In this document: piece after piece, positions 256-24,189 of the stretch
Layout: each line of letters begins with the position of its first letter
Position numbering within the stretch: the stretch's first letter is position 1
Assembly: GCA_054661495.1 (NCBI GenBank)
Contig: BAAFSQ010000126.1
Location: forward strand, 1 to 28,177
Source: Zygophlyctis sp. KS116
Taxonomy: Eukaryota; Fungi; Chytridiomycota
DNA: 28,177 nucleotides
Direction of reading: 5' to 3'
The notes under the pieces: model-generated
Databases searched by the model: none
Seen by the model: the letters and a program-made list of their open reading frames with translations, nothing else
What the model was told of the DNA's origin: nothing
Position numbers and translations under genes: made by a program

Positions 256-1753
256 TCACAGTAGTGTTTCTTGAATTTCGTTAATAATGCCTACTGGTTT
301 TTTAGAGAAATGAGTAAACCATAGTCCCTATTATTATCCCTAAAGAACTTACAGCAGATGGCGCTCCTATTAAAATTGCGGATACCATGCACATAAATAC
401 CAATTTAGCGTAATCTTCCTCTTCATTTCCACCCAGATTTTTCGAATGAACAATTTCCAGCGCTGCCCCACATAATGCCGCCTAAGATTTAAAAATAAAC
501 TGTTACCTGGACTGATGCTTTGCCTGTCCATATACCCGATACAAATGTACATTCTTCAACATCCAGATCACTAATGTAACATACCATAAATGTAAATAAA
601 AACTTGATAACTACCGAGCTCAAGACTAATCCAAGACATTCAAGAATCATATGGAGCGGAAGAATATTGAATGATACTGATGCTCCAATAACAGGAAACA
701 AGAACAATTTGAAAAAATCCCAAAGACTTTTGAGTCTTTTATCTGCTACTGAAATATCTACCTTTGTCCATGTATTAGCTGCTGTTGCCCAAGATATAAT
801 GATTGAGCAACATGCGATTCCAGTAGCAGAATAAGATTTACCCTTTGTCATCAATGATAACTAATCATACCCAACCCATAATCAGTGCAGATATTAGAAA
901 CATTGAAGAAAATGAAATGTTCTGATAAGATTTCACATATTTTAATAAAAATGCAATAAATCCAAAAACTGCTCCTAAAAGAATCCCAAAAAATATTTCC
1001 TCTAGAGCAACAATAGCCATTGAAGAATATGAAATCTGATCTAAAATTTCAAAATCTTTAAACGCATAATTTAGAGATATCCCAAATCCAATAGTAGCCA
1101 CCAAAACATCAATACTTGCAGAAGCAATCATCAATGGAGGTAATCTTGATCCATTCCATTCAGGATTTTCCTTTAGATTAAGGATCAAAGGAACAACAAC
1201 TCCAGGAGATATAGATGCAACTCCAAAAGACAGTAAATACGCCCATGGCTTAGGAATTTGAAACAGAGAGCGAGATAAGATTGCAAGCCAAGTAGTTTCG
1301 GAAAGAATGGGAATAGTCCCTAAAATCATTATTACATGTGCATTCTTTTTCAAAATATCTAAATCCAGGGATAATCCAGCCCTTGATATTACTGCTGCAA
1401 GTGACAGAGTCCACAACTTTGACGTCCATGAATGTGGAATATCCACTATAAGAAAAGGAAATGCATTCCGTAAAACTATCCCAGATACCAACATTCCCAG
1501 CATTGGCGGATAATTAATTCTAGATGCAAATTGTCCCCCAATCACTCCCATACCAATAGTTATCAATAACGATAGTAAAACAGATTGGTCCAAAGGGTTT
1601 ATCAAACGATTAAGTTGTCCGGTAATCACCAGGGTTATTAAAATCAATACCAATGTTATCGTAGAAATCCCAACAGCCTATTATTAAATTTATAATAATA
1701 TTTACTGAAAGAATTTTAAATCTTGGAGAGCATTTTGTCCTCTTTAATTCCAT
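256..1753 (-). CDS. Na+/H+ exchanger, NHA/SLC9B-like cation/proton antiporter, 5 exons
   Basis: Multi-TM protein with PPMLGMLVSG, RAGLSLD, SPGVVVP, ASIDVL and, once spliced, KASVQAALCG motifs. Introns 1678-1705 (28 nt), 843-870 (28), 482-506 (25), 328-352 (25), all GT-AG; stop TGA at 256-258. Confidence 0.85.
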
Positions 1754-1763
1754 AGTAATCATC

Positions 1764-1796
1764 TCGCGTTGTAATCACTTTTCGCGAATGACGTCA
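1764..1796. promoter_or_regulatory. CG-containing motif cluster upstream of the exchanger: TCGCG, palindrome TTCGCGAA (1781-1788), CRE-like TGACGTCA (1789-1796)
   Basis: Adjacent palindromes in otherwise CG-poor DNA, within 45 bp of the ATG; function inferred only. Confidence 0.35.
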
Positions 1797-1910
1797 GTTG
1801 CACTCTTGAATTTTATCTCGTCTAAAATCAGATATAAACTAGATCACAACTTTACAAACATTAATAAAACACATCATAAATCTTTAAAAACAAGGAAAAA
1901 AAAGTCTTAT

Positions 1911-2437
1911 TTAACGATCTTCACACCATTCATTTTCTTTTCTTATTTGTTCCTCTTCCTCTGGAGTAAAATCATTTTGAATGTTAAAAGTCTAAATTTA
2001 ACCAATATAGTAAAACACCTTTCTTATTTCTTCGACAGATTTTCCCTTGATCATATTTGCGACAGTTTTACAACCCAAATCTAATAATCCCTTCATATCC
2101 AAATAATTTGCAGCTAAAATCATTTCAAATAAAGTTCCTTGATCAACATTTGTAAATTCACGATCCCAATCATCAATATCATCAGACGATTTAACTTTCA
2201 AGTCTTCTTCAGTAGGAAGCGGAGGGTCATCCTTATGATGAGTAGCATATTCAATGACTAGCGTTACTTTTATATTTTACCTTTTGCTAAAATTTGCCCA
2301 GAAACATTTGGAAGTGGAATTGGAGCTTCGCCCTCCTCTCCAAAATCCTCGAGCATATTCTTTAAAAGTACAGACATGTTGGCCACTTCTTTTGGAACAG
2401 TGAATTCTTGTCCATCTGCAGAAGTTAATTTTACCAT
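1911..2437 (-). CDS. SKP1: SCF ubiquitin ligase subunit Skp1, 3 exons
   Basis: Spliced product [12 protein letters not shown]...[13 protein letters not shown]|VIEYATHH...[38 protein letters not shown]|[26 protein letters not shown]; introns 2258-2280 (23 nt) and 1992-2018 (27 nt). Confidence 0.97.
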
Positions 2438-2639
2438 TTGAACGGTAACCCTTCAGTAAACCCTATAAAATTTAACCTAATTTATTGTCCCATTATCATC
2501 CTTGTGCCTTGTTGCACACTCTTTTTGTAATAAATACGTTTTTAAAATTTTCATCTTTTATCTTTTTTTAAAACCTTGTGTCTGATGAGCGACTTTTTAG
2601 AAAATTCTCAATTGAAAATTTTCAAAAATTGTGGCACCT

Positions 2640-3782: not shown

Positions 3783-3884
3783 TTGGTTGTGATTACGTTT
3801 CTTTTTGTTTCATAGATCTGTTTCACAGAGTTTCAGAAAGAATTGCGGCATCTATTTTCAGTTTAGCAAAAATAAAAAAATCTA

Positions 3885-4583
3885 ATGAAGGTTCAAGTTG
3901 AATTCGCAGTTAAATCGACCGATCCAAATCAAACTGAATCCCTTATTAAAAAGGCTCTAAATCCATGGCCAGTCTCATTCAATTTCGGCAATGATCGTTT
4001 GACTGTTCAAACTCAAGATCAAAGTCCATCATTTTTACTCAATGCTTTAAGAGCAACTGGACTAATAGCATTGATCAGAGGACTATCTTCCGCTGCAACT
4101 AGATCTTCAACTGCTTACACTGCTCCAGCATCAGCAGTTTGCATTTTTGAAGCGTATAGTGGTGCAGCTGGCTGGGCTCAGAACGCAAACAAGGGAGTCG
4201 CTAGATTAGCACAATTAGATCATGATCAAGTTTTTATAGATGTCAATGCTTCAGATTTACTCGTATCAAAAGAATATTCAATAGAAATTAGAGAATGTGG
4301 AGATATCTCTGATGGTGCAGCAAGTACAGGGGACGTTTATCAAAAGATTTCAAATGTATTCTCTGATGATCAAGGAAAAATAGAATATGTAACAGAAATT
4401 CAAGGAGCTAAAATTTCTGATTTGATTGGAAGATCTCTGGTTCTATATCCCTCTCAAAATTTCAATGATAAAAATCATCATATTGCTGGTATTATAGCTA
4501 GATCTGCTGGAGTATTTGAAAATCAAAAGACTATTTGTGCTTGTTCTGGTAAAACATTGTGGGAGGAAGCTTGTAAACTTTAA
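3885..4583 (+). CDS. CCS1: Copper chaperone for superoxide dismutase
   Basis: HMA-like N-terminus (EFAV...), SOD-like middle domain (ECGDISDGAASTG, LIGRSLV) and C-terminal GIIARSAGVFENQKTICACSGKTLWEE with the CxC motif. Confidence 0.92.
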   Translation: MKVQVEFAVKSTDPNQTESLIKKALNPWPVSFNFGNDRLTVQTQDQSPSFLLNALRATGLIALIRGLSSAATRSSTAYTAPASAVCIFEAYSGAAGWAQNANKGVARLAQLDHDQVFIDVNASDLLVSKEYSIEIRECGDISDGAASTGDVYQKISNVFSDDQGKIEYVTEIQGAKISDLIGRSLVLYPSQNFNDKNHHIAGIIARSAGVFENQKTICACSGKTLWEEACKL

Positions 4584-6188
4584 CCATTCTGAATAACATG
4601 TGCTAGCATTTTAGAGTTCTTCTTAATAGATTCAGTTTGAAGCTTATTCAAATATCCCATGGGTGAAAATGCTCTTGACCCTCCTATACATCTTCCCAGG
4701 ATTACTAGAGAATCCATATTTTCTACAAATTCCTTTAATTCTTCAAACGTAATTTTGGCTGGTAAATTGGTCACAGCTTCCAGATTAGGACAATATTCCC
4801 TTACACTATGAATGACTCCAGTTGATATATTATGATTGTTAAAAGGAAGTGAAATTCTTGTCAATGTTTTGCCATGATTCTGAATTATTTTTAAAATGCT
4901 AAAATCCGTAATATTTGATGCAGTTCCTAGTGCGATTCTTTTTAAATTGCCTTGATTACTTATACTTGAAAGCCCTGAATCCGTAATGTTTCTTCCATCT
5001 ACAACATCCAACTCTTCCAACTCTAAACAAACACTTGACAAGACTAGAAGAGGATCATCTGTAGTAATAGGAATTATTAAAGACTTTAAACGTGTCATAC
5101 TTGAAAGTAATTGACAAATTTCATCATCCGTAGCACTAGAAAGAACAGAAGCCACATTTTTCGAAGGAACAATTAATAATCTTTCTAAATTTGGAAAATA
5201 GTCCTTTTTAGGCAATAGATTTGATAAAAATCCCAATCCATCCAATTTTAATTCTTTCAGTTGAATATTTCTTCCGTCTTTTAGCAAAGCCTGATACAAT
5301 TCTTGAGAATCTGTAGAACTAAAAGACATTTCACATATTTCTAGTGCTGAAATTTTCTTATTCCCTTTTAAAAGTGAAAATAATGCAGACGGTTTCTTTG
5401 AACAACCTAATTTTAATTGGTTTAAATTATGTAGATTTTCTGAAGCCGTTTGAATTACATTTTCCATATCATAAAGCACCCAATCCAATTCTAGAACTCT
5501 TAAATCCTTGAATTTTGTTAATAATAGACTTATAGTATGAAAAACATTTGTTAATTCTTGGAATTTTTCAGTCTCATTGACCAATTGAAATCCAAAACCT
5601 AAAACATTAAAAAAAACACAAACCTTGTAAATTCTTTTCTAAAAGACAACCTAAGCCTCTACTACTGACTAGAACTTCTTGACGACGCCTACAAGAATGA
5701 TCAACCTTTATAAAGAAACTTTTGAGACTAGAGTTTTAGTGTATATTAATCTACTTTTTTTCACTTAATACTTGTAACCCTTGATCAGTAATTTTACCGT
5801 ATTCCTTCCAAGTACTGTATAGTCTAACATGCTGTAAATGATTACAATATTTTGAAATGATCCATAAATCATCATCATTAATGACTGGAGTAGCACAGTT
5901 AAATCGCGTTAAATTTTTACAATTTGAGATAAATTTACAAAATCCATTCAGAGGTTCATTTTCAAGTTTTAGACAAGTTTTTATAGACAATTCTTGAATA
6001 TTTTTCAAAAAAGTTTTTTTTAAAGAATTGATTTTCACCCAATTTTCTGAATAAAATCCACATTTTTTCCATAGAATTTTACTACATACTCTATAAAATT
6101 TCTTTGAGACTAGACTATAGTCTTTTAATTGTTTTACCAGACAATAAACAAGAATTTCCTGTAAAAGTTCAACAGGCAAATTTTCCAT
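4580..6188 (-). CDS. F-box / LRR (RNI-like) protein, 3 exons
   Basis: N-terminal F-box LPVELLQEILVY...SLVSKKFY; LRR motifs ITDQGL, ITDSGL, CPNLEAV; introns 5728-5754 (27 nt) and 5599-5623 (25 nt) join ORFs 5751-6188 and 4580-5584 in frame. Confidence 0.88.
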
Positions 6189-7005: not shown

Positions 7006-8986
7006 ATGATTTATAATATTTTTATAATTGCTTTGATGGGATCAGTAAAGTCACAGATTCCATCATGTATTAATAGTACATCTACTGGGCCTTGTGAACA
7101 AGATAATTTTAGGACAATCATTGCAACTAGATCAGATTCTGATAATCATATTTGTCGAACTGTTTATTCTAGCGTAACATGCGGTCACTGCTCTACTACT
7201 GCTACGTTTATGGGATCATGCTCTAATTCTCTAATTACAACGATTTATCAGACTAAATCGGCATTTAATGGGGGATCGCCTTGTTCTTCTCCAACTTTTG
7301 TAGTAGGAAAATGTGCGGATTGTGCTTATTCACCAGTGGCAGGGTCTTGTGATGGAAAATCTAGGATTGTAAACTATAAAACAACAAATCCTGTTAATGG
7401 TGGGGCGTATTGTACTCCATATTCGACTACAGAAACTTGTCATAACTGCGAAACAGTAACTTCAACTGGGACTTGTGATGGGACAAAAAGGCAAGTGTCT
7501 TTTAAAACTACTGGGTCTACTTTAAATGGTGGGACATGTTTAGAACCAACTCCGACAAGTCAATCTTGTGCAGATGGTACAGTAACATCAACCGTTGGTG
7601 CTTGTATTGATAATATACACTTGACTGCCTACTTTTATGCACCTCCTGTAAATGGTGGAAAAAATTGTACTCTGCCGATTCCTTACGATGTGACTCAGTC
7701 TTGTCGAAATTGTAGAACGGTTTCAACTAAATTCGATAGTTGCTCTGATAATTTAGCAAAGGTTACATATATTACTACTCCAGCAGTTGGTGGTCAAGAT
7801 TGTACTGCAACAGGCCCTGCTTCTTTGCCTTGTCATAATTGTCACACAACAGCGACAGTTGTAGGGGCATGTGTATCGTCATACCGTCAAGTTCAATATT
7901 TTACCGATAATGCAGTAAATGGAGCTCCTTGCTCCGGGCCAACTATGACTAGTCAACCATGCGCTGATTGTCAAATTACAGCAATAAGTGGGGCTTGCGA
8001 TGCTAATAAGCATCGTACTGTGACATTCGAAACAATTCCTCCAATCAATGGTGGTAAGGCGTGTTCAAACCCAACTCCATCAGCCATAGTTGAGGATTGT
8101 AAAGTGTGTCCTAGCAATGCTCATGATTGCTGTTTCGTGGTAGAAATGTGGAAAAACTTTGGTAAAAATACAGGAGTAAGTGAGGAAGATCCTAGCGATT
8201 GTTGTTATGGTGATATACCGGGTATAAAGTGTTTCAAGGAAAAAGTTATTACACTGTATGCAATTCTATATTATTTAAAAATTAGAAATTGGGAGTCAAG
8301 AAATCTAACCGGACCAATCCCCGATCAGATGTCTAAATTGACATCGTTGCGCACATTGTATTTTTATAAGCTTTTTAATATTTAGAAAATTGGGTCATAA
8401 TTTTTTAAATGGAACAGTTCCTTCAACGCTCAGTAACCTTGTAAATTTAGAAAACTTGTATTTTTTATTCATCTTAAATTAGGCAACTTAGTAATAATAA
8501 TTTTTCGGGATCTATAGATAGTAAAATTCTATCCCTACCTCTGCTATCATCACTGTAAGATATTAAGAGGCATTTAATTTAAGGAAACTCAATAAAAATC
8601 ATTACTTGACTGGAGAAATTATGGCTGGAGATAATGTCGATGCGTAAGCAATAGTTAATTAATGAATGTATAGAGATATTAGTGACACGAGCGCTAAATT
8701 CATGCCCAGTAATGATGATAATCACCCAATACAGTATCTCTGCCAAGCCGTTAAAAACAACGGATCTAATATCCTTAAAACAAATCAAAACAAAAAAAAG
8801 TTACTGTATGAAAACGGCATAAGATATCATCAGGATAAAAAGCCCAATGAAGGCGTCCATAGAGATGTTTTGTATTCAGATGAGCGCAAAGAAATAAAAG
8901 CGGCACAACATCAAGTGCCACAAAATCGAGTGAAAGAAAATGATGATATTTTAATTGAATTAGATAGACAACGTCGTTATATGTGA
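7006..8986 (+). CDS. Secreted protein with about 7-8 Cys-rich TSP1-like repeats followed by plant-type LRRs, 6 exons
   Basis: Signal peptide from ATG 7006; ~43-aa repeats with PxNGGxxC; LRRs LTGPIP, LNGTVP, FSGSID. Phase-2 introns 8256-8285 (30), 8358-8385 (28), 8458-8482 (25), 8555-8583 (29), 8644-8673 (30); the last exon is the frame of ORF 8666-8986. Confidence 0.8.
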
Positions 8987-9069: not shown

Positions 9070-10259
9070 CTAAGACTTTAAATACGTTAATATTCGAAGG
9101 AAAAAAGACGAAAGCATATCTCCATCGAATTCAATTTCTTCCATTAGATATGGCGGTAGAGATTCCAGAACTGCAGAGGATGTTTTCATCCCAGAAAATT
9201 CTTGATCAAGTAAAGGAATATATTCTACTGAAGCATATTGATCAATGTTTAGAGGTGCACGAATTTGAAAAACAAGATCTCGATTTAGTGATAAAATATA
9301 TACCTCCTTTGCATCCCGTCTGATGACATGTATAGCTAATGATTGAATCAACGCCAGGGACCTTGTCGACAGAGAGTATAGTTAGTCCGGACAACTCTTT
9401 GTAAAAATTCATTAGATCTCCATTTTTTGAATTCTCTTGAGAAATTATTCCTGTCATGTTTTCATCAATTTGAGTCTTTAAACATTCAACTTCTTTAACC
9501 AGCATTTCATTATTATCTCTTCTTTCATTTACTAGCTCCATTAGAGATGCCTTTTCAACATTCCAATCACTTTGAGCGATATGCATCTGTTGGATATAAG
9601 CCGCTTTTGTCTGTTCTTTGACTGCAGAAATTTCTAGCTCTAATTCTTCTTTTGATATTGCAGATCCTACTGATTTCTCCAAATAAGAAATTTTATCTTG
9701 CAATTGCTGCACCAGTGTTTTATAGTCTATAATTACATCCAATATAAAAACCTTGAATCTGAACATCACAAGCATCCTTAAATTCATCAAAGCGTTTTTC
9801 TGCCTCCAAAATACCAACAAGCTTCAAGTCATTGTATTGTTTTTCTAATTCTTGGAATGCATGTTTCAATTCTGGAAAATTAAGCTCATCCATATTGCTC
9901 TCATTAGACAAATTCATTTGGTCATCTTTAGAAATATCGGCCTGATAAAGTCTCTGTCCGATTTCATCTTGACCGTGTGCCTCGACGTGATTTGTTGGAT
10001 ATTTGTCTATAATTTCTTCATGCTTTAATTCTTTTACAATCTTCTTCTTTTTAGATACAACTGCAGTCTTTTTAGACTCTTCTTGAGAATTTTGTCCCTT
10101 CTTTTGTACTTTTTTGTCCGATTTCTTTACTTTTTTAATAGTCTTTAAATCTGTAGTCCCTCCAATCAGGTCATCTACATCACCATCAAATGATTCATGT
10201 ACTGCTTGAAGCATTTAAATACTTTTCGGAGTTTTGAAAAGTCCTCCCGCTCGCATCAT
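9070..10259 (-). CDS. CSM1: Monopolin subunit Csm1/Pcs1-like (coiled coil plus C-terminal Csm1 domain)
   Basis: FYKELSGLTI...YTCHQTGCKG|DLVFQI...EYIPLLD...LPPYLMEEIEF...FFLRI; introns 9727-9751 (25), 9279-9303 (25) and tentative 10202-10222 (21; otherwise start at 10214). Confidence 0.82.
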
Positions 10260-10298: not shown

Positions 10299-11068
10299 CT
10301 ATAGAGTACTATGAGTACTTTCAGCTATTATCCATTGAAACATTCCAAAAATAAAAACCATAGAAATTGATCCAGCACCAAAAACAATCGGATAAATCCA
10401 ATACTTTGAAATTCCAGCATCATTCGCTTGCTTTAGTCTAATTGCCAAATCTGAACTAGAAAATGTCCCATCCGGTCCTGGCTTTACAAAATCAAGAAGA
10501 ATCTTTTCTAATTTCAACAATGTAACAATTGCTTCTGGATGATCTATATATTTTTTAGAATTTTAAAACTACCATTTTTCCATTCATAAAGTTGCACAAT
10601 AATATTTTCCAAGACTACTAAATTGTCAACAACGTCTCTAAAATATAAATCATATAATCATACTTTTTATCCAATCTATTTGCAGAGCCATCCCCATCCC
10701 GTTCCTCCAACGCACTTGCAATCAAATTTTTCTGTAAATCTGCCATTGCCAGTAATGAAGCCCTTTTTGCAGCCTGAATACTTTTACTTGGCTTTTGCTG
10801 ATCGTTAAACATTTTAAATTACTAAAAAAGTTTGTAAATGACTCTTTAAAATTAATGAAATTCTAGAGTTGAATTTCCCATAAACTCTAGAAATATAACG
10901 AGACTGGAGCGGAGACGCTTTAAATTTTCTTCCTTTTCCTAAAAATAAAGATGCAGTCATATTTCCTCCAACATCATGAGAAATCTTTAAAGAAAATGGT
11001 GCTACAAACTCATCAAGCGATATTGGCCTTGAGAAAACAACTGCTATTATCAATAAGAACAGAAACAT
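10299..11068 (-). CDS. Uncharacterised signal-peptide protein with C-terminal TM (paralog A), 4 exons
   Basis: Introns 10798-10822 (25), 10638-10663 (26), 10544-10572 (29) join three ORFs; spliced WKNDHPE...LDFVKPGPDG aligns with paralog B WKSQHPQ...LDFIKPGPNG. Confidence 0.75.
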
Positions 11069-11139
11069 TTTTAAAACTACTCCTCAACCTGATTACAATC
11101 TAAAACAATTTTGTAGTTTGTATTTTGTAGAGTCAAATC

Positions 11140-11821
11140 TTATTCACTTTTAACTAATAGATAGCTTCGAACAGAATCAAACACTCCTAAAACATGTCCC
11201 ATACTAATCGCACCAGCTGCAAATAGAATAGGATAAATTAATACTTTTTCCAATCCACTAGACTTTAGAATTTTGTAATCTTGAACTAATTCAGAGGATT
11301 CTAATGTCCCATTAGGTCCTGGTTTAATAAAATCTAGAATTCGTTTTCCTAATACTCCTAATTGTTTGAATTCTTGTGGATGTTGTGATTTCCATCTTGA
11401 AATTTCCACGATTGCATCTTTAATAACATTTACAATTTCTGTTGGATCTCTAAACTGATAAGAACCAAATAAAATTTTACCGTTTGAAAATTTTCCTTTT
11501 TCTTGAATTTATAACAGTGGAAAACCAAGCAGATCGTAATTTTAGAATTGTATATTTTGTAAACCATTGTTTATTCAATAGAGTATGAGTAGGAATTATT
11601 TTGACTATTTCCAAGACTTTTAAAGGAAATTCATGATTGATCTTTTCTAAATCTAATAAAGAATGAGTATTTAAACCAAGGATTTTGGTTGACACACTTA
11701 GATTTCCCAAGACTTCACGAGATATAACCTGAGTTTTTGAAATTAATACATCTCTAAGAGATTTTTGGCAGGATATGACTGAAAACAAGGTTATAAAAAG
11801 GAAATGTAAAAACAATTTCAT
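11140..11821 (-). CDS. Uncharacterised signal-peptide protein with C-terminal TM (paralog B), 2 exons
   Basis: Signal peptide MKLFLHFLFITLFSVISC; phase-2 intron 11450-11480 (31 nt) at a position equivalent to intron 2 of paralog A; shared KPGP[ND]GT and IYPI[LV]F[AG]AG motifs. Confidence 0.72.
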
Positions 11822-12019
11822 ATTCTCAATCTGGAGGCTTTAAACAGGAAAAGCCTTTTGCAATTGTGCTGAAGATGGAAATGGACATGGAAATACGGAA
11901 GCTCATTCAAGAAATTCTCTGTCAAGAGGTAAGAATTTAATAGATCTAGTAGATTACAAATACAACGGTAAGATTGATTCAATTTTGAAACTTGTGTGCT
12001 CCTACACCTCTAGTAAAAA

Positions 12020-13036
12020 ATGAACCAACTCAAAGATTTCTTAGAGTCTATTGATTCTAGAACCGATTGCATGGATGCTATTAATAATTTCTTGGAAAAT
12101 CTTGATTTAGATTTCTCGGATCGGAGTAATTATGATGTACAAACTCTGTTGCATTTGGCAGTCTCAAAAGGAAATTTAGATGCAACTCAGACTTTATTAG
12201 CAGCTGGGCATCCTTGGAATGCATTAGATAAAGATGGACTATCAGTAGGAGATGTTGCATTAAAATATGGGTTTAAAGAGTTGTACAAGTTTTTAGTCTT
12301 GGAAGGGGCTAGAACAGAATTCTTATTGACGGCTTTAGGTATTCCTGGAACTGATTCAGCAGTTGACAAGGAAGTTTCTAATGTAGAGTATCTGAATTCT
12401 AAATTGGAATTTGTAGAAAATCAATTGGTTGACGCTGATCATAATGGAGTCATGATGGGTTGGGAAGAGCCATTGATGAAATTACATGCAAATATCATTT
12501 GTCCAAAAGAAGGATTAAGAATTCTTAATGTTGGATTTGGATTGGGTATCATTGATTTAGAAATTCAAAAGAGGAAACCTGTTTCTCATACTATAGTTGA
12601 AGCTCATCCAGACGTTTATAAGAAAATGATTGAGGATGGTTGGGATCAAATTCAAGGAGTTCAAGTTATTTTTGGGAGATGGCAAGATGTTTTAGATAAA
12701 TTACAAGTGTATGATGGAATTTTTTTCGACACATTTGGAGAGTATTATGATGATTTAAAGGAATTTCATGAACACTTGCCAAATATTTTAGACGAAAATG
12801 GAACTTATTCTTATTTTAATGGGCTTGCTGGAACAAATGTATTCTTTCATGATGTCGCTTGCCAAATTGCAGAGTGCGATTTAGAGGAAATTGGTTTCAC
12901 TCTAGAGTACAAAACTCTAACAGTAGATGATCTAGGAAGCGATGTTTGGAAGGGTATAAAAAGAGCATATTGGACTTTACCTCAATATAAAGCTCCAGTT
13001 TGTAAGTTGATTGATATGACTTGCATTGGTCGTTAA
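12020..13036 (+). CDS. RMT2: Protein arginine N-methyltransferase 2 (ankyrin + RMT2/GAMT-type methyltransferase)
   Basis: TLLHLAV, GHPWNALD, VMMGWEEPLM, ILNVGFGLGIID, HTIVEAHPDV, YDGIFFDTFGE motifs. Confidence 0.95.
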   Translation: MNQLKDFLESIDSRTDCMDAINNFLENLDLDFSDRSNYDVQTLLHLAVSKGNLDATQTLLAAGHPWNALDKDGLSVGDVALKYGFKELYKFLVLEGARTEFLLTALGIPGTDSAVDKEVSNVEYLNSKLEFVENQLVDADHNGVMMGWEEPLMKLHANIICPKEGLRILNVGFGLGIIDLEIQKRKPVSHTIVEAHPDVYKKMIEDGWDQIQGVQVIFGRWQDVLDKLQVYDGIFFDTFGEYYDDLKEFHEHLPNILDENGTYSYFNGLAGTNVFFHDVACQIAECDLEEIGFTLEYKTLTVDDLGSDVWKGIKRAYWTLPQYKAPVCKLIDMTCIGR

Positions 13037-13078: not shown

Positions 13079-14903
13079 ATGCATTACTTCCATCCAAAAA
13101 ATGAAATAGATAAGAGGTTTGCAATGGATGAGCTCGCTAAAAATTATCAAGATTTTCATAAAAACATTCATTCTACGATTTCTAGAGCAACAGGAAAAAA
13201 GGAAATTCATATACATGATCAAGTACAGTCTCCAAATGAAGCGATTTATGAAAGATTGGTAGCTGCTCCAGGAAAATATGAGGTATTTTAAGAAACATTA
13301 AAACTCAGATCATTGGTACAGATCAATGTCCGATTTCTTTCTCGGATGGACACATTGAGTCGCACTTAAAAGTACTAAAAGTCAATCCCAATTTCATGGA
13401 TGAATATGAAAAAATTAGGATCGAAGAGGAATATAAGAAGCAATTTGCTCCTAGAATAGGCTGGCAAAAGTCTTTTATGGTTGCATTAAATTCTGGAAAT
13501 CTAAAATCTATGTCTGTTGATTTTCCAATTATATCAGGGTGTAAGAAAAGGAGAAGAAATGCTCTTGTTGGAATTTCAACGATGGATTTTAATGCTCGAG
13601 CTGTATGGCATAAGGCAATCTATAAAGTCATTTACGGAATCAGAGCTGCTAAAGCATCCACAATAATTGATACCGTATCAGATAAGAGTTTAGTTTCTCA
13701 ACTTCATGAATTTCAAAGTAAAGCTGATTCAATGACACTAGCAAAGATTTCAGCAGCATTAGATATGCCTCCTTCATTAAGATCGGACGAAGACTTACGG
13801 TTTCTGAATAGAGTCCTTATGTCAAGAGTGAAAAGTTTTGCTAAATTCTCTCCAGAACAGCGGATAGAACTTTGCAGAGTAATGAGGTTAGAGAAGCATA
13901 TGGCTGGTGCAACTATACTGAAACAAGGTCATCCTCCACTCAATTTCTATTTTATGTTTTCTGGGCAATGTGATATCGTAAAAAATAGATCAGATGGAAT
14001 GGCGGGACGTGTTAGAGTTCATGTGATTAATAGTGGGTAAATCAGAATTTGAATTTATAATAGTGAATCATTTGGAGCCGTGGCATTAGAAGGACTTGTA
14101 CAAGAAACACGAACTGCCACAGTAATTTGTGCAACTGAATCGGTTTTCCTAGTTATTGATAAAGGCAAGATTTGGGAAATTTCAATTTTTAGATCAATAT
14201 CGCAGAATAGCATCGGGACAGGATTCTCCTGATCAATTGTCCCTGAGAATCTCACTCCTAAAAAACATAACAGTATTTTTGGATTGTGATCCATCCACTT
14301 TAGAGCAAGTTGCGTTGAAAACAAGAATAACTTATTATGAACAAGATTCTGTAATTTTAGTAATCAGATTTTATCGGCTCTAAAAAATAGAAAGAAGGGC
14401 AAATTTCGACTAGAATCTTTTTTATAACCAAAGGTTCAGTCAAAATATCCAAAAAAATCTCAGTTGTTAAATTCAACGATCGACCAAAATATATTCCTCA
14501 TGATTCCTCTTCACCATTACAAAAAAACCAAGTAGTAATCAGCCCTCAAATCATATATTGTTCATGTCAAAGCGGAGGGCATTTTCCTGAACCAGATGAT
14601 CCATTTCTCTATGATGTTGAAAACGATCTTAATTTTAAACAGAAATTAATTAATCGACTCACATTCTTAGAGCCTAGATGCTTGAATATCGCTAATGAAA
14701 CTATTGAATGTAAAACTCCTGTTGTTTGCGTTCACATGAATGCATTAGATTTTGCAAAACTCGTCACGCCTCATATTATCCAAAAAACACTTGTTGAATC
14801 TATAAAATTCAGAGTTTCTCCTGAAGATTTGGTAAAGCAATTCATTATCAAGCATGAATGGGATATCTATAAGAAGAAAATGATTGCTCAGTATAAAAAA
14901 TAA
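13079..14903 (+). CDS. Cyclic nucleotide-binding domain protein (two CNB folds, CNBD2-like), 5 exons
   Basis: ILKQGHPPLNFYFMFSGQC, G|ESFGAVAL...RTATV, VIL|KEGQISTRIFFITKGSV; introns 13283-13308 (26), 14037-14063 (27), 14165-14192 (28, GC-AG), 14360-14390 (31) give one continuous frame. Confidence 0.85.
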
Positions 14904-16207: not shown

Positions 16208-18148
16208 TTAATTACTAAAATCCATCATTCCAGAATCTAATTCGATTCCTGCTCCTATAAATGCAGGAGTTGGAGAAGAGACAGGAGTGGAAAAATCAAG
16301 CAAACCGTCTTGATGGTTGGCCTTTTTCTCTTTCAAGGGTGTATTCTGCACTGATGATTTCAAATGCCAAATGATTTTCTATAATTTAGAATTAAAAACT
16401 TACTGCATCTTTCCCTCTCTTTTCCTTGATAAACATATCCTTTATCTTTTGTTCGACTGCTGATTTTTTTAAACTTTCATGTCTAAAAATTAAAAATATT
16501 AATGATTACTTTGATTTGAAATCATCTACAATCTTTGCTAAAGAATTACCAGTCCCTAGAACTTCCTTTTTTTTAAAATTTTATAATTACAGAAGTTAAT
16601 TCTTCGACCAGCTCTAAAGGAAATACTGCTTTTCTAGATATGGAACGACCCAGAGACTTTTTTTCATCAGATTCAAGGACATATTCTTTGAAAGGATCAA
16701 TAAACTGCTCACCACCTATTATGTTATATCCGTGAACTTTACCAAGAATACGAATCGGACAGGATGCCAGCATTTGTCCATTTAATACCATTGGGTGGTC
16801 ATCATACTGAATCCCAACAATTATTGGGACTTTTTGTTCAAGAATCGTACGCTTTGGCAAATCCGTGGTATCTTCTAAATCCTTATAAATCCTGACTTAC
16901 TTTTACATGGTTTATTTGCATGATCCTCATCAATCCCCTCATCATCTGATAAATATCCATGAGGAACTACCCATCCCTATATATTTAAAACACAAGAGTC
17001 ATAATACATCATTATCATCCTCATCATCAACTTCCATTAGCTCGTCCTCATCGTCCAAATCATCATCACTCTTTAGCTCTTCTCCAGGTTCATCCTCTTC
17101 CCATTCAGCCTCACTATCATACTCATAATCCAACAAATCAGCATCTTGAGCAAAAGGCTTTCTACCACTTATTACCGTTGATATTTTTGACCATGTCCCT
17201 TGATTTTTAAACAAACTTTAAATTACCAAAATAAGGCGGTCTGACATTTTCAGAAAACTTTAAAATTTTAAATTGGAGCAATTTATCCAGAGTTTTTTGA
17301 CTTTTCTTCTTGTATTCCTTTAAAATATCAAAATCTTGCTTAAAATCATTTAAATCAAAATTCTTTAATTGACATGATTTTAGCCCAATTTCCACATATT
17401 CAGGCTGATGAAACGGTAAAAAAGTTTTTTCATACTCTGTTTTTTCCTTTTCAAGTATCTTTACGACTTGTTCCTTTGGAATTGCCGTAAAAAACCCTTG
17501 AATAGACATTTGACTCTTGTCTTTTTTCTTTGACTCTTCCAACCTCTTTTTCTCTTCCTCTTTTTTCAATTTTTCCTGTTTTTTCAAATCTCTTTCAGTC
17601 TCTTTTTCCAATTTTTTAGCCAATTTTTCTGCATCCTTTAATTCCTTTAAAACTTGTTTTTCCCTTGTTTTATCATCCTTTACTTTTTTATCTCCTTTTA
17701 CCCCTAAAATATTTTTCAAGTCTTGTAGAGACATGCCTCGTGTTAATTCTACCAATTCCTCTTGCAACTTGATACGTGACTGTATCCCATTTTCCAGTGA
17801 TTCTAGTGACTCTATAGGAAAATACAATTCTTTTTCCTTTACATCCCATCTATAAATTGGATAAATTTCCAGTCCATAATTGACTCTAATAGCCAAATCA
17901 GCAACAATAGCCTGAATATCCAAATTTAGAGTATTTAGAGTATTTTTAAGTGTTTTTACCAGTTCCTTTAAATTTTGACTCGAGTCTTGAATGAGTTTAG
18001 CAACAAGACTTTTGAATTCTGCAGGAAATTCCTTAAACGGAGCAGACTTTTGCAAAGTTAGAAATTCTGCCAATTGAGTTAAAGTCCAAGGTTCATTATT
18101 AGTTTTTAGATTAATATCTTTAATATCCTTTACTTTTTGTTTAATCAT
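16208..18148 (-). CDS. RLF2: Chromatin assembly factor 1 subunit A (p150/Cac1/Rlf2), 7 exons
   Basis: KER coiled coil, PIP-like QMSIQGFF, ENVRPPYF|GTW, LDYEYDSEAEWEEDEPGEEL, GWVVPHGYLSDDEG; introns 17199-17226 (28), 16977-17007 (31), 16875-16900 (26), 16566-16590 (25), 16483-16509 (27), 16379-16403 (25). Confidence 0.93.
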
Positions 18149-18351: not shown

Positions 18352-18985
18352 ATGACCAACATCTACTTGTTTATCCCAAATATCATTGGTTATTTTAGAA
18401 TCATTTTAGCAATCATTTCTTGCCATTATTTCTCTTCACATCCTATTCTAGCAATGATACTCTATTTTCTATCTTGTCTCTTGGATGCATTTGATGGATT
18501 TACTGCTAGATTATATAACCAATGTAATTTATAATTTATAATTTTTAGCGTCTAAATTTGGTGCTGTATTAGATATGGTGACAGATCGTTGTACTACTGC
18601 TAGTCTACTAGTATATTTAGCTCATGTATTTCCTTCTTGTATGGGATTAATTCAATTTTTAATTGCTTTAGACTTTAGTTCTCATTATTGTCAAATGGTA
18701 TCTTGTCTAACTCTTGGATCTTCTTCTCATAAAAAATTATCTTCTTCTTCCAATCTCTTATTGCGACTATATTATGAAAATTCTGTAATGCTATTTTTAG
18801 TTTGTGCTGGAAATGAAGTATTTTTTATGGCTTGTTATCTATCAATATTTTATTGGAATTCATGGACTATTGGACTTGGAATAATTTCATTTCCAATTTG
18901 TCTTTTTAAACAGGTTTTAAATGTTATTCAATTACAAGGAGCAACTCAAGAATTAGTAAATTTTGAAAAGAATAAGTACAGATAA
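18352..18985 (+). CDS. PIS1: Phosphatidylinositol synthase (CDP-DAG-inositol 3-phosphatidyltransferase), 2 exons
   Basis: FIPNIIGYFR, LLDAFDGFTARLYNQ|SSKFGAVLDMVTDRC CDP-alcohol phosphotransferase motif restored by intron 18524-18548 (25 nt). Confidence 0.96.
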
Positions 18986-19012
18986 ACTCGTTTAAAAACA
19001 ATTATCCAACAG

Positions 19013-19324: not shown

Positions 19325-19393
19325 TTTTTTTTTCAAGTTGAAACGCGAAAATTCTAAACGCCACTATATAATAAAACGCCACAATTTATTAAT

Positions 19394-19621
19394 TCAAGGC
19401 AAAGTCCCCGCATCTACGACAATTGCATCTAATTTATCATTAGATTCCTTTTTTTTGTTTTTATTGTAAAGTTTAACTCCAAATATAATCATTGAAATTA
19501 TGAAAAAAATTGAGGTTATTATTGCTGAAAGTTGAGTTACAGGAGTAGAAGATTTTCTATATCTGTTGCTTGTGATTGCATTTACACTCAAAAAGATTAG
19601 AGGTCCAAGAATGTTATTCAT
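19394..19621 (-). CDS. Small 75-aa membrane protein of unknown function
   Basis: ATG after an A-rich leader; hydrophobic N-terminus, TM segment AIITSIFFIISMIIFGV, basic patch; fills the gap between two genes. Confidence 0.55.
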   Translation of the reverse strand: MNNILGPLIFLSVNAITSNRYRKSSTPVTQLSAIITSIFFIISMIIFGVKLYNKNKKKESNDKLDAIVVDAGTLP

Positions 19622-19663
19622 TTTTTTTTATTAAACTAAACAAACAATTTAAACAATGCAAGT

Positions 19664-20410
19664 CTAAAAATAACTACCAAAGCTAGTCTGAAATGATTTA
19701 TAATACAGAGAAAATTTTGGAGATTCTAGAGGTGATTCTAAAAGTGATTCAAATTCACTTTCAGAGTCTGAAGGAGTTGGAGATTTCTCTCTTGATAAAT
19801 ATACCTGTAAATTTAAAAACATTTTTTAAAAAAGGATTACCTGGTAATTTTGTCCTTTATTATTATCCCAATAATCAGTTCCATTCACAGTATATCTTAG
19901 ACAAAAACTTAATTTTTCTCTAAATTTGACTAAAGGATCCAAGTCTAGCGTAAATACAAATTCATCAATTCCAGTAAATGATCCAAAAGTATTAGAAATA
20001 CTCTTTGAAAAAGTACAATCAAGATCTTGGAATGATTTCCAGTCGTCCCAAGAGTATCGGACAGTAACTGTTTTTTCAAAAGATAGATTTTTGACTAGAA
20101 CAATTCCAAATATTCCACAAGTGAGTGAAAGAGATCCAAGACAAATATGATTTCCAAAAAATCCAAGTCTATAGTCGAAATTTGAATCATAAATAGTCCA
20201 TTTCTTAAAGTCGGAAATACTGTATCGCCGACTAGATGCAATTCGAGAAGGAGAATCTGTTTTCTTGAAAATACAAATGTTTTCAATGTTTTTAGAAAAT
20301 CTGATTTTGCCCCTGTAGGATTGACTTCTGGACATGGATAGAGGAGTGTCTTGGTTAAATAAACTCAGATCATTATGGGAAAATGAGCGTTTGAAAGGGG
20401 CAGAATTCAT
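19664..20410 (-). CDS. CBM21 protein, PP1 glycogen-targeting regulatory subunit (Gac1/PPP1R3-like), 2 exons
   Basis: RVxF-like KIRF; GIVLVKNLSFEKTVTVRYSWDDW and YWDNNKGQNYQ CBM21 motifs; predicted intron 19805-19840 (36 nt) adds a 46-aa Ser/Pro-rich tail. Confidence 0.88.
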
Positions 20411-20494
20411 GGTCAGAAATTGCCCTAAAACCTGACTCAATGATAACTCTCTTGTAATTCAAATCACTTTTTATTCAAATCGCATTGGTGCACT

Positions 20495-21196
20495 CTACTT
20501 TTCTTTAGAGTATATAGAGTCTTTGGACTTTATGACATCAATGTTTCTCTTGACAGAAGGTCCTCGCGCCAAGTTACCAGATGATCCAGTTGTAGAAAGT
20601 CCACTTTGAATTGCAGCAGCGATTGGGACTCCCGCCACAGTCGCTGCTTGACGATTTGTGATTTGAGATAAATCTGCAGTCAAGTTTGGTTGATCTCTTC
20701 CAGCTATTCCTCTTCCTTTTCCATCTTCATCAAATCGATGTTTATGAGTACCAGTGTATTTGCTGGTATCAGTTAGTCTAGACACAATTTCAGCGTTTTT
20801 TAAAGGAACTGTTCCGGTGCTTTTTGGGCCTGGCTTGGAACAAACAAACTTTACAAGTGAAGAATAGGCTTCAGTTGTTTGCAATTTTGGAGATCTCTTT
20901 AAAGCAATCAATTTCAAAGCTTCTTGAAAGGCTCCAAAATCTAATTTTCTACCATCTCGCTTTTTAACCTTGTTGAAAAAGATGTCAATATCAGTAGAAG
21001 TAATAGTCTTGTCTAGGATTTTAGTATCTCTGGCAAACTTTGCAAATTTAGATCCTAGAATTTAGAATTTAGAAATACCATCCATAAGTGGACCGTTCAA
21101 TGACTCATTGGAGCTAGCTGAAATTGCTAGATTCTTGGATGATCCAAATTGGCAAAAGGAGTTGTAAACACTGTAGAGATCTTCAATATGAGCCAT
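20495..21196 (-). CDS. TPPP: Tubulin polymerization-promoting protein (p25alpha domain), 2 exons
   Basis: MD|GSKFAKFARDTKI...DIDIFFNKVK and RLTDTSKYTGTHKHRFDEDGKGRGIAGR; intron 21055-21078 (24 nt). Confidence 0.92.
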
Positions 21197-21252
21197 TCTC
21201 TTTCAAAATGTAATTGTTTGTTTATTCGGAGATAAGTAAACATCCGGTCACG

Positions 21253-22032: not shown

Positions 22033-22066
22033 TTTTCAAGTTTGCGGAAGACACGAATTAAAAAAC

Positions 22067-22543
22067 ATGTTGCGATCATTAATTCCTAAATTCCAATTGC
22101 CTCTTGGACGATCTTGGTATACTAGTATTTTTTATATTATTAAGTCTATAGCCCGTAGATATACATCGGATCATGAATGGGTAAGTCTACATAACGGAGT
22201 TGCTACAATTGGAATTTCTGACTATGCTCAGAAAGCACTCGGAGATGTAGTCTACATTGAGTTTCCTCAGGTTGGAGCTTCTTTTAATCAAAAGGGTATT
22301 TTATTAACTCTTATATTAGATCCTTTGGGAGCAGTAGAATCAGTCAAGGCAGCGTCTGATATCTACGCTCCAATTTCTGGTTCTGTTTTAAAAGTAAATC
22401 AAGATCTTGAAGGTAAACCAGGACTTATTAATTCTTCTCCTTTTGATCAAGGATGGATAGTACAATTAAAATGCAATGATGCAAAACAATTGGAAAATCT
22501 ATTAGATGAAGAGAGTTACAAAAAGTATATTGATAGCCTTTAA
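22067..22543 (+). CDS. GCV3: Glycine cleavage system H protein, mitochondrial, 3 exons
   Basis: YTSDHEWV, IGISDYAQKALGDVVYIE, lipoyl motif VESVKAASDIYAP; two in-frame stop-free introns 22125-22151 (27) and 22296-22319 (24). Confidence 0.95.
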   Translation: MLRSLIPKFQLPLGRSWYTSIFYIIKSIARRYTSDHEWVSLHNGVATIGISDYAQKALGDVVYIEFPQVGASFNQKGILLTLILDPLGAVESVKAASDIYAPISGSVLKVNQDLEGKPGLINSSPFDQGWIVQLKCNDAKQLENLLDEESYKKYIDSL

Positions 22544-23052
22544 ACATCTTTAAGTTTTTTAAAAGGTTGAATTTCTGATTCATCTAGACTCTTTCTCTTG
22601 GAGTCTTTTTTGATTCCCAGTCTTAGAATTATTTTCTTTTCGCCACCTGTAGCTCCCAAAGTATTTGAAGTATTTGATGATTCAGTTTTAGGAATTTTAC
22701 AAGTCGTTACAGTAGAGTTTAATGTAGAATTAGGATCTACAAGACCCATTGGAACGTTTACAGTCTGTTTAATAGGATCTGGAATAGGGATTTGATTTGG
22801 ATCTACCTGATCGACAGTAAAAATTCTAATAATATCATCAATATTAAGATCTGGTTTAGTTTTAGAAAAGGTCGAAGAGAGAGAATGGCCTTGAAAATCA
22901 ATTTCTCCGGGTAAATCTGATAAATAGCTTGACAGACCAGTTGATGATGAGTTGATTAAATAGTCTTTGACTTGTTGTTTTAATGAAAATCGTTCAAATA
23001 CATCATGGTCTTTTGGGTTGATTTCACTGAGAGGAATTCTTGATCCAAACAT
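22540..23052 (-). CDS. Probable Mediator subunit Med19-like protein
   Basis: LSSYLSDLPGEID resembles the Med19 core LSNFLPDLPGMID as I recall it; basic C-terminus. Single-motif support only. Confidence 0.5.
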   Translation of the reverse strand: MFGSRIPLSEINPKDHDVFERFSLKQQVKDYLINSSSTGLSSYLSDLPGEIDFQGHSLSSTFSKTKPDLNIDDIIRIFTVDQVDPNQIPIPDPIKQTVNVPMGLVDPNSTLNSTVTTCKIPKTESSNTSNTLGATGGEKKIILRLGIKKDSKRKSLDESEIQPFKKLKDV

Positions 23053-23285
23053 TCTACGCCAAAGCCTAGTTTTAGGTTTCCTTGCTTTTATGATAGTATT
23101 GCTTTAGTGATTTAGATATCTGTTCTAGACTAAAGAATTTAGACTTGAATTTTATTGTGAAGCTCTGAATTATTAGAGTTTTTGAAGACGCGGACAAGAT
23201 CTTTTGCTAATTCTTTTAATAGATTTAGGACTGAAAGAAAACTTGCCGCACCTAAGCATCTGACCATATTTTTAAAATAAAACAA

Positions 23286-24189
23286 ATGATTGCAGTCTTG
23301 ATTGTTAATGCTTTAGTGATGCATTCAGCCCTCTCTCAAGGTTGTGGGAAGAATGTGCTGGTTGATGATTTCTCAACGACTCAAAACAAGTTTATTGAAG
23401 GCGCTGATCGAATCATCAATAAAATTGGAGGGGATTATGGGACAGACGGCAAAACTACTTTTAGCATTAGTACTACAGATAAAACTATAACTGTCATTCC
23501 TCAAGCTAATGATCAAGTTTTCTTTTTTGCTAAATTTGTAATATTTTTGGTATAATCTAATTATAGGATGAAGGTTCATGCTTTGATCTCACAAATTTCT
23601 ATGGCTTTCAATTTGATCTTTTAGCTCCAGAGGGTGCAACCGGCACTTTTACTCTCACCCAAAAGACTGCTGACTGTTCTGCAAGAGTTGACAGTATGTT
23701 TAGACTCTAAATTAATTTTTAGATGGCGATTCCGTCTATCTTCCTCTTTCTAAATACTATACGACTCCAGGGACGAAACAGACGGTTGTGATGCCGTTTG
23801 CTGATTTTACTCAATTGGCATCTGGTAAAGGTGTTTATGATTTCTTGCATTTGAAGGATTGGACATTTGTAGATCCCAAACCATTGGGTCAGCCTTTTGT
23901 CTTTTCAAACATGATTTTACTAGGGGGTGCTCCTGGATGTAATGGAACAGTGGTAGGTAATGGTACCCTTCCCGGTAATGGTACAGTTGTTGGTAATGGG
24001 ACACTAACGGGAAACGGTACACTTGCCGGGAATGGTACACTTGCCGGGAATGGTACAATCGGTGGAAATACTGGAAATACTTCCTCTACAGATGGCTCTA
24101 CTGTTCCAACCACAGCTGCTAGTAATGATGCGTATGTTAGTTTTAGTTTAGGCATACTTATTATCTCTATGCTTTCTATTTTTGATTAG
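23286..24189 (+). CDS. Secreted, probably GPI-anchored surface protein (beta-rich N-terminal domain, GNGT stalk), 3 exons
   Basis: Signal peptide; introns 23538-23566 (29) and 23694-23722 (29); C-terminus AASNDAYVSFSLGILIISMLSIFD resembles a GPI signal. Confidence 0.82.
23941..24066 (+). repeat. 18-bp x7 coding repeat, (NGTxxG)7
   Basis: NGTVVG NGTLPG NGTVVG NGTLTG NGTLAG NGTLAG NGTIGG. Confidence 0.9.

Follow-up and report, generated by a model that had tools for sequence, protein, structure and literature searches.

Tiny introns in a Zygophlyctis-sample genome and in relatives from the Rhizophydiales

Introns shorter than 30 nt are still treated as exceptions confined to ciliates, microsporidia and nucleomorphs plus a few reduced parasites, and the animal case dates from 2026. 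Chlorarachniophyte nucleomorph introns are 18-21 nt long. They match the size class of the chytrids Gorgonomyces and Boothiomyces and both systems are intron-rich, but the nucleomorph is the relic nucleus of an endosymbiont, whereas chytrids are independent cells, several of them cultured. Introns of Paramecium tetraurelia are about 25 nt long and number more than 90,000 (10.1101/2021.08.05.455221). The chytrid introns described here are alike in size, narrow spread and AT-rich, apparently U2-type GT..AG character, and both genomes are intron-rich and belong to the nucleus of a free-living organism. Paramecium is however a ciliate that has two nuclei and uses a variant code, whereas our organism is a fungus, reads the standard code and has near relatives with introns of 19 and of 55-290 nt.

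Introns of 15-16 nt were described for Stentor coeruleus (PMC9505925) and of 16-17 nt for Mikrocytos (PMC10245619). As in these two, the putative branch A was near-fixed and close to the 3' end, and the five major snRNAs were found in the assembly while the minor ones were not. The loop of 10-11 nt in Stentor and Mikrocytos contrasts with a predicted 17-22 nt here and 13 nt in Gorgonomyces, and both are intron-poor, whereas the chytrid has about 3 introns per gene. Myxobolid myxozoans have a median intron of 27 bp, and dicyemid introns are also tiny (PMC13644364). The near-equal median, the retention of standard U2 machinery and an independent shrinkage within the opisthokonts are common to these animals and the chytrid, but myxobolids and dicyemids are reduced animal parasites. 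As earlier cases the 2026 paper names only ciliates, microsporidia and dicyemids, with chytrids unmentioned (PMC13644364). The list of known cases in a preceding sequence-only reading of this DNA omitted mikrocytids, myxozoans and dicyemids.

On the fungal side, microsporidia are the sole other tiny-intron case named in the literature that we compared. Their introns are few, conserved in sequence and served by a reduced spliceosome (PMC10245619), and the short ones are often poorly spliced (PMC13644364); the chytrid introns, in contrast, were many and degenerate, and no sign of reduction was seen among the spliceosome parts tested. Cryptococcus neoformans, the short-intron example of a fungal survey of 644 genomes with two Chytridiomycota, has a mean intron of 63 bp (PMC8476143); it is likewise intron-rich with degenerate signals, but its introns are more than twice as long. 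In the openly searchable literature, that is outside subscription journals and the JGI portal, no report of tiny introns in chytrids, or in fungi beyond microsporidia, was found.

Intron sizes in the genome sample and in the window

The genome sample comprised six contigs with 228 kb, or 1.8% of the 12.7 Mb assembly. Introns were called with a self-trained gene finder under a flat length prior of 12-400 nt, followed by a second pass with the learned prior. Under the flat prior 325 introns were called in the 228 kb, with a mode of 26 and a median of 27 nt, and 305 of them measured 20-40 nt. The earlier expectation that the tiny size holds genome-wide, with a mode not above 45 nt, agrees with the histogram of this sample, and so does that of an intron-rich genome (about 2.3 introns per kb of coding sequence, 3.1 per gene). 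In the negative control, intron-less coding sequences that had been re-embedded gave 0 tiny calls; in the positive control, planted introns of 60-120 nt were recovered at their true size in 294 of 334 cases. Independent of any gene model, GTAWDT..YTAG pairs spaced 24-30 nt were observed 140 times, where the 45-120 nt background predicts 66. The proportion of tiny calls under a flat prior, the annotation-free excess of pairs and the controls together show that the tiny introns are not due to chance. We concluded that the Zygophlyctis-sample genome has a tiny-intron system with a modal length below 30 nt in the 228-kb sample. An in-frame stop was present in 85% of the introns with a length divisible by three and in 63% of the others; the finder under-calls stop-less introns of the former class, and under the flat prior both GCV3 introns, which belong to it, were missed.

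The window, i.e. the whole stretch of 28,177 nt analysed here, had been proposed to contain 37 such segments. We recovered 36 of them independently in 14 genes and one doubtful mini-ORF (21-36 nt), while one 25-mer could not be placed. The length tally was thus reproduced with nine instead of ten segments of 25 nt, the others being one each of 21, 23 and 36 nt, two each of 24 and 30 nt, three each of 26 and 31 nt, four of 29 nt and five each of 27 and 28 nt. That no long intron is needed held for the window, but three longer candidates (44, 52 and 82 nt) were retained in the 228-kb sample. Removal of the GT/GC..AG segments restored the reading frames, as seen by gene finder, homology and domain alignments. 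Homology, meaning either that a syntenic relative has an intron at this position or that an orthologue without one aligns straight across, backed 26 of the 36, and the gene finder alone the other 10. Orthologous introns were compared mainly with L001, a relative with a nucleotide identity of about 70%.

On the reverse strand, the gene of an NHA-type Na/H exchanger contains introns at 1678..1705 (28 nt; flat and learned prior), 843..870 (28 nt), 482..506 (25 nt; also called under the flat prior) and 328..352 (25 nt; learned prior only), and the alignment with Gorgonomyces NHA spans the second and third site. SKP1, on the same strand, has a 23-nt phase 1 intron at 2258..2280, identical in position and phase to a 19-nt intron of Gorgonomyces, and a 27-nt phase 0 intron at 1992..2018, also 19 nt in Gorgonomyces. 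Its exon 1 corresponds to Skp1_POZ 2-52, exon 2 closes with positions 1-25 of Pfam Skp1 and exon 3 opens with 26-48; for Skp1 as for GCV3 domain continuity was exact once the introns were removed. In the F-box/LRR-like gene (reverse strand) the intron at 5728..5754 (27 nt) has a 25-nt orthologue in L001, and across the one at 5599..5623 (25 nt) the L001 orthologue, which lacks it, aligns. The gene for a secreted Cys-rich/LRR protein (forward strand) carries five phase 2 introns at 8256..8285 (30 nt; 30 in L001), 8358..8385 (28; 29), 8458..8482 (25; 24), 8555..8583 (29; 27) and 8644..8673 (30 nt), the last spanned by the L001 protein alignment. On the reverse strand follow a coiled-coil protein gene with 25-nt introns at 9727..9751 (25 nt in L001) and at 9279..9303 (GAG end; 24 nt in L001, flanks identical), a small protein gene with introns at 10638..10663 (26 nt) and 10544..10572 (29 nt), both absent from the L001 orthologue, which aligns across them, and a paralogous small protein gene with one at 11450..11480 (31 nt; 27 in L001).

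The 21-nt GT..AG segment at 11929..11949 (forward strand) is doubtful: it was called by the gene finder in an 18-codon ORF only, has no homology and lies upstream of the intron-less RMT2 (12020..13036, forward strand), our phylogenetic marker for searches and trees. The gene of a cNMP-binding protein (forward strand) has introns at 13283..13308 (26 nt; 26 in L001 and L118), where L002 and run X4 lack 1 nt at 13304, at 14037..14063 (27 nt; 26 in L001 and L118), at 14165..14192 (28 nt, GC-AG; a 29-nt GT-AG intron at the matching site of L001) and at 14360..14390 (31 nt, phase 0; 27 in L001, 19 in Gorgonomyces, 91 in Polyrhizophydium), with a 1-nt insertion in L002. The six introns of CAF-1 subunit A (reverse strand) were all called under the flat prior: 17199..17226 (28 nt), which links the CAF1A_acidic with the CAF1A_dimeriz exon, 16977..17007 (31 nt; run X7 lacks 3 nt at 17001), 16875..16900 (26 nt), 16566..16590 (25 nt), 16483..16509 (27 nt) and 16379..16403 (25 nt). 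The 25-nt phase 1 intron of PIS1 at 18524..18548 (forward strand) has counterparts at the same site of 26 nt in L001, 29 in L118, 19 in Gorgonomyces, 32 in Globomyces and about 289 nt in Polyrhizophydium; this intron and the first one of SKP1 had been singled out by the earlier reading, and both are GT..AG segments.

The CBM21 gene intron at 19805..19840 (reverse strand, 36 nt) matches a 27-nt intron of L001. The TPPP/p25alpha intron at 21055..21078 (reverse strand, 24 nt, phase 1) measures 26 nt in L001 and L118 and 19 nt in Gorgonomyces, and the intron-less orthologue of L116/L117 aligns across it. We rejected L116/L117 as transcripts because they carry two neighbouring genes, and thus regard them as DNA of a relative lacking this intron. 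GCV3 (forward strand) has two in-frame, stop-less introns, at 22125..22151 (27 nt; learned prior only) and at 22296..22319 (24 nt), the latter corresponding to an exact 8-residue insertion relative to solved H-proteins. Across the introns of a secreted protein gene at 23538..23566 and 23694..23722 (both 29 nt, forward strand) a Gorgonomyces orthologue could be aligned. Gene-finder calls at 4684-4705 and 22622-22646 were rejected, as they lie inside intact long ORFs and have poor donors, and the flat-prior calls at 4549-4565, 14143-14164 and 14351-14390 were rejected on L001 homology.

Placement of the organism and introns of its relatives

The organism had been suspected to be a chytrid, and this was upheld: the best named Rmt2 matches were chytrids, a p25alpha gene is present, and in the marker phylogeny, an RMT2+eRF1 tree, it fell into the chytrid clade with 99/100. 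A position as sister to all named Rhizophydiales received an SH-aLRT of 95 in one tree and 63/60 in the RMT2+eRF1 tree, both without Zygophlyctidales and Clade I, the sisters of Rhizophydiales, which offer no named sequences for comparison. Eight genes are syntenic with Gorgonomyces. Judged by these comparisons, the organism appears to be a chytrid in or beside the Rhizophydiales.

The low-order gene finder was crude on named chytrids and useless for the GC-rich Polyrhizophydium, and only homology-anchored sizes were used for relatives. In Gorgonomyces haynaldii 13 of 13 orthologous introns measured 19-20 nt, with position -9 always T and position -7 always A. Boothiomyces had orthologous introns of 19-22 nt, and those of Globomyces started at 25 nt, introns of 25-32 nt standing beside others of 100-200 nt. 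In Batrachochytrium, Polyrhizophydium and Gaertneriomyces the range was about 55-290 nt. Tiny introns, many of them 19-30 nt, have a third to half of the sizes in other chytrids, and in position and phase they match introns of 19-289 nt in named species. The trait proposed for this organism is present but not private to it, since named cultured Rhizophydiales, several of them with public genomes, have it too, some with even shorter introns (19 nt). It appears from the orthologous introns to belong to part of the Rhizophydiales lineage, the Batrachochytrium group having normal sizes. A JGI metagenome scan returned mostly algae and short contigs.

Splice signals, machinery and alternative explanations

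Donors were GT, rarely GC, with a weak GTA(A/T)(T/G)T consensus; the intron middle was U-rich and the ends were TAG, AAG or CAG. A degenerate branch-like motif, (C/T)TAA(T/A), placed its last A 7-9 nt before the intron end, and T[AG]A with the A at -7 to -9 occurred in 71% of 421 introns versus 19-25% in adjacent windows. A pyrimidine tract cannot fit between this A and the AG. Searches of the genome detected U1, U2, U4, U5, U6, Prp8, Isy1, SF1, RBM22, a Cir/Cwc25-type protein and UPF1, so that every part looked for in the proposed snRNA and protein inventory was found, by presence only. The branch-pairing sequence of U2 was canonical (GUAGUA). The idea of a spliceosome adapted to tiny introns, put forward in the earlier reading, is at this stage a hypothesis. 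U12 snRNA was not found in the possibly incomplete assembly by a search run without a positive control, and the donor table, GTA(A/T).., differed from the U12-type 5' consensus. We consider it very probable that the segments are ordinary spliceosomal introns of the U2 type which shrank to a narrow size class, many of them at ancestral positions.

Such introns would be recognized by intron definition, across their own length. U1 and then U6 would occupy the 5' site, and SF1 and U2 the branch A; the motif positions predict a lariat whose loop spans about 17-22 nt and whose tail has 6-8 nt. The AG would be selected through its fixed distance from the branch and not through a tract. Retained copies may be cleared through NMD, UPF1 being present, because most of them would shift the frame or meet a stop. 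In Gorgonomyces the same geometry would be tighter (19 nt; loop of 13 nt, branch A at -7).

A search of sequencing runs found this sequence in DNA runs only, the assembly itself is most likely metagenome-derived, and one may ask whether the segments are never spliced, being assembly errors, decay of pseudogenes or stretches bypassed by frameshifting or stop read-through. This is highly improbable: the segments recurred in independent lake samples and L002, intron-less joints were absent from the DNA of four lake metagenomes, and essential genes (SKP1, PIS1, eRF1, CAF-1) contain them. In 15 orthologous pairs with L001 the cores had diverged in sequence and length, to the 50% identity of AT-rich background, while flanks and GT/AG were conserved. 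In-gene indels of the lake populations (1 nt, plus the 3 nt at 17001) lay solely inside introns, with 0 in 2,689 coding nt, and recoding would not allow tolerated 1-nt changes. Removal by tRNA-endonuclease or IRE1-type cleavage and ligation, routes which process very short introns in other systems, is just as remote given the uniform GT-AG, the branch-like A at a fixed distance, the AT-rich unstructured cores and the positions homologous to long spliceosomal introns; moreover, the full major snRNA set is kept although almost no longer introns need it.

Real introns could also be recent insertions of an introner-like burst instead of shrunken old ones, which the absence of those at 5599, 10544 and 10638 from L001 and of the TPPP intron from L116 would favour. 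We regard this as improbable, since the PIS1, SKP1, TPPP and cNMP positions are common to Gorgonomyces, Globomyces or Polyrhizophydium, and the near-identical inner sequences of introners were not seen among the introns (flat position-wise base table, diverse donors); gain and loss may supplement shrinkage, not substitute for it. A spliceosome in which some parts (Cwc25 plug, Isy1 N-terminus, RBM22, SF3b contacts) were lost or rebuilt and which splices long introns hardly or not at all is a less remote idea, if still a doubtful one. For Stentor, changes of this kind have been proposed (PMC9505925), and the upper length limit is very sharp in both our genome and Gorgonomyces. Against it, Isy1 (from profile position 1), the RBM22 N-domain, SF1 and a Cir_N/Cwc25-type domain all scored over the profile cut-offs, the RMT2 gene of a tiny-intron relative (L118, L037) contains a 171-nt intron whose branch motif is normal, and in Globomyces both size classes coexist.

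Annotation and meaning for the chytrids

The warning that such genes would be mis-annotated proved justified. Many 19-nt introns already sit in public annotations. The length of the public Gorgonomyces PIS1 model is explicable only by a false 31-nt intron, which destroys the catalytic motif, and prokaryote-style gene calls split tiny-intron chytrid genes into their exons. Mis-annotation currently affects both the genomes of chytrids and metagenome bins from lakes, with at least one public Gorgonomyces model corrupted.

Tentatively, introns below 30 nt may be ancestral to Rhizophydiales and their sister lineage, having become nearly invariant in cultured saprotrophs, at 19 nt, and having grown again in the Batrachochytrium group, with matching spliceosome changes traceable among relatives with introns of 19, 26 and 60-120 nt; we hold this history to be possible rather than likely. 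If true, the tiny-intron state would be reversible. How 19-26 nt can accommodate U1, U2/SF3b and U6 is a structural puzzle, and earlier systems were hard to handle or had no close relatives whose introns are normal. One fungal order appears to span a graded series at homologous positions (19, about 26, 25-200 mixed and 55-290 nt), and as this includes cultured saprotrophs, the question of minimum length becomes testable by comparison and biochemistry. Chytrids that can be grown would thereby offer a route to asking how the large spliceosome fits on such short introns.

Census and anatomy of the short introns

The window is gene-dense with a GC content of 33%, and its ORFs are fragmented into short stretches. 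Genes were called on both strands with a purpose-written gene finder, trained on long ORFs and bare GT/AG only, in which the prior for intron length was flat from 12 to 400 nt, so that the answer was not built in. In the window plus 200 kb from five other contigs of the assembly (C1-C5), 325 introns were called, 305 of them between 20 and 40 nt (mode 26, median 27). A learned prior gave 442 introns in 143 genes of the same sample (2.3 per kb of CDS), and the only plausible longer introns were candidates of 44, 52 and 82 nt. When intron-less CDS were re-embedded in real spacers, a partly circular control as these CDS were model-derived, five calls were made and none was under 41 nt. Planted introns of 60–120 nt were called at the planted size in 294 of 334 cases, with just two calls below 41 nt. 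Without any gene model, GTAWDT..YTAG pairs at a spacing of 24–30 nt were observed 140 times against 66 expected. The sequence-only reading had claimed 37 introns of 21–36 nt in the window; our independent list of 36 segments matched its length tally except for one 25-mer, which had no counterpart, and the introns it had named in SKP1 and PIS1 were found with GT..AG exactly where it had placed them.

The intron ends and a branch-like motif are evident at the sequence level. Intron GC was 21%, position +3 was A in 94%, and at +5 T was commoner than G. The 3' ends were TAG (74%), AAG (18%), CAG (7%) and GAG (1%). A T[AG]A motif whose final A falls between -7 and -9 was present in 71% of 421 introns versus 19–25% in adjoining windows, frequently as TTAAT, TTAAA, CTAAA or CTAAT. 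This putative branch A lies mostly 17–22 nt from the 5' end; a pyrimidine tract cannot fit 3' of it, and the U-rich portion is upstream. An in-frame stop was detected in 85% of 3n introns versus 63% of the others, an excess resembling that in Paramecium, although our calling method is biased in that direction.

Comparative evidence for splicing

A search of sequencing runs for this DNA matched none of RNA, and the case for splicing is comparative. A syntenic contig of a relative from another sample (L001), with approx. 70% nucleotide identity to the window, carries candidate introns of 24–30 nt at 15 matching positions, GT/AG being retained. Identity in these pairs was 68% in the flanks and 50% in the cores, the level expected for unrelated AT-rich DNA. 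Where relatives lack an intron their proteins align without a break, as in L001 for the F-box gene (5599) and at 10544 and 10638, in the relative L116/L117 for TPPP, and in Gorgonomyces haynaldii for NHA. TPPP of L116/L117 is 81% identical and has precisely lost an otherwise conserved phase-1 intron. In an exon-by-exon search the Pfam Skp1 match stopped at position 25 before the 27-nt segment of SKP1 and restarted at 26, and the 24-nt segment of GCV3, if read through, is an exact 8-residue insert relative to solved H-proteins. Conspecific lake populations differed within genes by three indels only, at 13304 (-1), 14364 (+1) and 17001 (-3); each lies in a predicted intron, and no indel was found in 2,689 bases of coding sequence. 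The 1-base changes at 13304 and 14364 would do harm unless the segment is excised.

Chytrid relatives and the age of the introns

The assembly comprises 12.7 Mb in 1,175 contigs, and its DNA was found in freshwater metagenomes from many studies. The top matches of Rmt2, encoded by an intron-less gene, were unnamed lake sequences and chytrids. In a quick Rmt2 tree the window, L001 and three environmental proteins were sister to the named Rhizophydiales (SH-aLRT 95); RMT2+eRF1 gave the same topology with weak support (63/60), within a well-supported chytrid clade. Zygophlyctidales and Clade I, which adjoin Rhizophydiales according to Thome et al. (10.1101/2023.06.28.546836), are not represented by named sequences in these trees.

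The RMT2 scaffold of Gorgonomyces (GCA_025526955.1) keeps synteny with the window, sharing the order NHA, SKP1, RMT2, cNMP, PIS1, HMG, CBM21, TPPP and a secreted-protein gene at 23286 (256-23722), part of which also occurs in Polyrhizophydium and Globomyces. Between the cNMP gene and PIS1 lie an intron-less gene of richer GC (15243-16073, 41%) and the CAF-1 gene (16208-18148), both missing there in L001 and another relative, L118. Within 8256-8673 the LRR gene has exons of exactly 72 nt (8286-8357, 8386-8457, 8483-8554) between phase-2 introns, a layout found also in L001. Two or three small paralogues (10299-11821) have a common C-terminal motif ahead of a hydrophobic tail, and their intron presence differs from that in L001; three intron-less tandem paralogues (24285-27935) encode 296–410 aa with signal-peptide-like starts.

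The named chytrids were sampled at approx. 20 kb per species. Public gene spans of Gorgonomyces exceed the CDS by 19, 20, 38 or 57 nt, from which introns of 19–20 nt were solved; every one of the 13 studied carries A at -7, preceded by a purine (-8) and a T (-9). Boothiomyces sp. JEL0866 has introns of 19–22 nt, in which the branch-like A seems to lie one base closer to the 3' end than in Gorgonomyces. Crude gene finding called 19-nt introns also in an environmental representative of the Gorgonomyces side. Globomyces pollinis-pini mixes introns of 25–32 nt with ones of 60–210 nt, even within one gene, and those of Batrachochytrium (approx. 57–120 nt), Gaertneriomyces (55–73 nt) and Polyrhizophydium (85–290 nt) are normal-sized.

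Several introns share position and phase: in PIS1 (window 25, L001 26, Gorgonomyces 19, Globomyces 32, Polyrhizophydium approx. 289 nt), SKP1 (window/Gorgonomyces 23/19 and 27/19 nt), TPPP (window 24, L001 26, Gorgonomyces 19 nt) and the cNMP gene (window 31, L001 27, Gorgonomyces 19, Polyrhizophydium 91 nt). Judged by these positions, they are old introns that shrank. In our trees tiny introns fall on three branches with the Batrachochytrium group nested among them; one origin with re-expansion and several origins both fit, as branch support is too weak for a choice.

The sequence-only reading had predicted that tiny-intron genes would be mis-annotated, and the public PIS1 model of Gorgonomyces is such a case. 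Its 210 aa were reproduced only by a 31-nt intron deleting the conserved CDP-alcohol transferase motif, which a 19-nt GC-AG intron restores (214 aa). The 31-nt intron appears to be false, chosen because the true one, of 19 nt, is GC-AG.

Splicing machinery, mechanism and known systems

The machinery is encoded in the genome: U1, U2, U4, U5 and U6 snRNAs, Prp8, Isy1, SF1, RBM22/Ecm2, a Cir/Cwc25-type domain, and UPF1. The U2 snRNA carries the canonical branch-pairing sequence. A genome search for U12 snRNA, run without a positive control, gave no match. U1 has two tandem copies, U2 two copies with identical scores and U5 five matches in two clusters; the U6 match covers 113 nt, whereas its model has 105 positions.

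Very probably, the introns are recognised across their own length (intron definition) by the standard major spliceosome, which would use an AG lying a short, constant distance from the branch A and form a lariat loop of 17–22 nt (13 nt in Gorgonomyces). We infer lariat formation, splicing efficiency and NMD clean-up of retained copies. That the spliceosomal proteins were remodelled for tiny introns is less likely than not: the factors flagged in Stentor are present in this genome, and in a relative whose other introns measure 26–29 nt the RMT2 gene (L118:5949-6848 and L037) keeps one intron of 171 nt, its branch motif normal, so that long introns would still be spliceable in that lineage.

As a kind, tiny introns are already known, from Paramecium (approx. 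25 nt, 10.1101/2021.08.05.455221), Stentor (15–16 nt, PMC9505925), Mikrocytos (16–17 nt, PMC10245619) and myxobolids (27 bp, PMC13644364). The latter paper, from 2026, counts ciliates, microsporidia and dicyemids as the earlier exceptions, without chytrids among them. A survey of 644 fungal genomes gives 63 bp as its short-intron example (PMC8476143), and intron size is not discussed in the chytrid genome papers PMC9457484, PMC5364385, 10.1101/2021.11.03.467166 and PMC13618815. In the literature outside subscription journals and portal pages we found no report of tiny introns in fungi other than microsporidia; since 19-nt chytrid introns are implicit in public annotations, others may already have noticed them. 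What the chytrids add is cultured species together with close relatives that have long introns.
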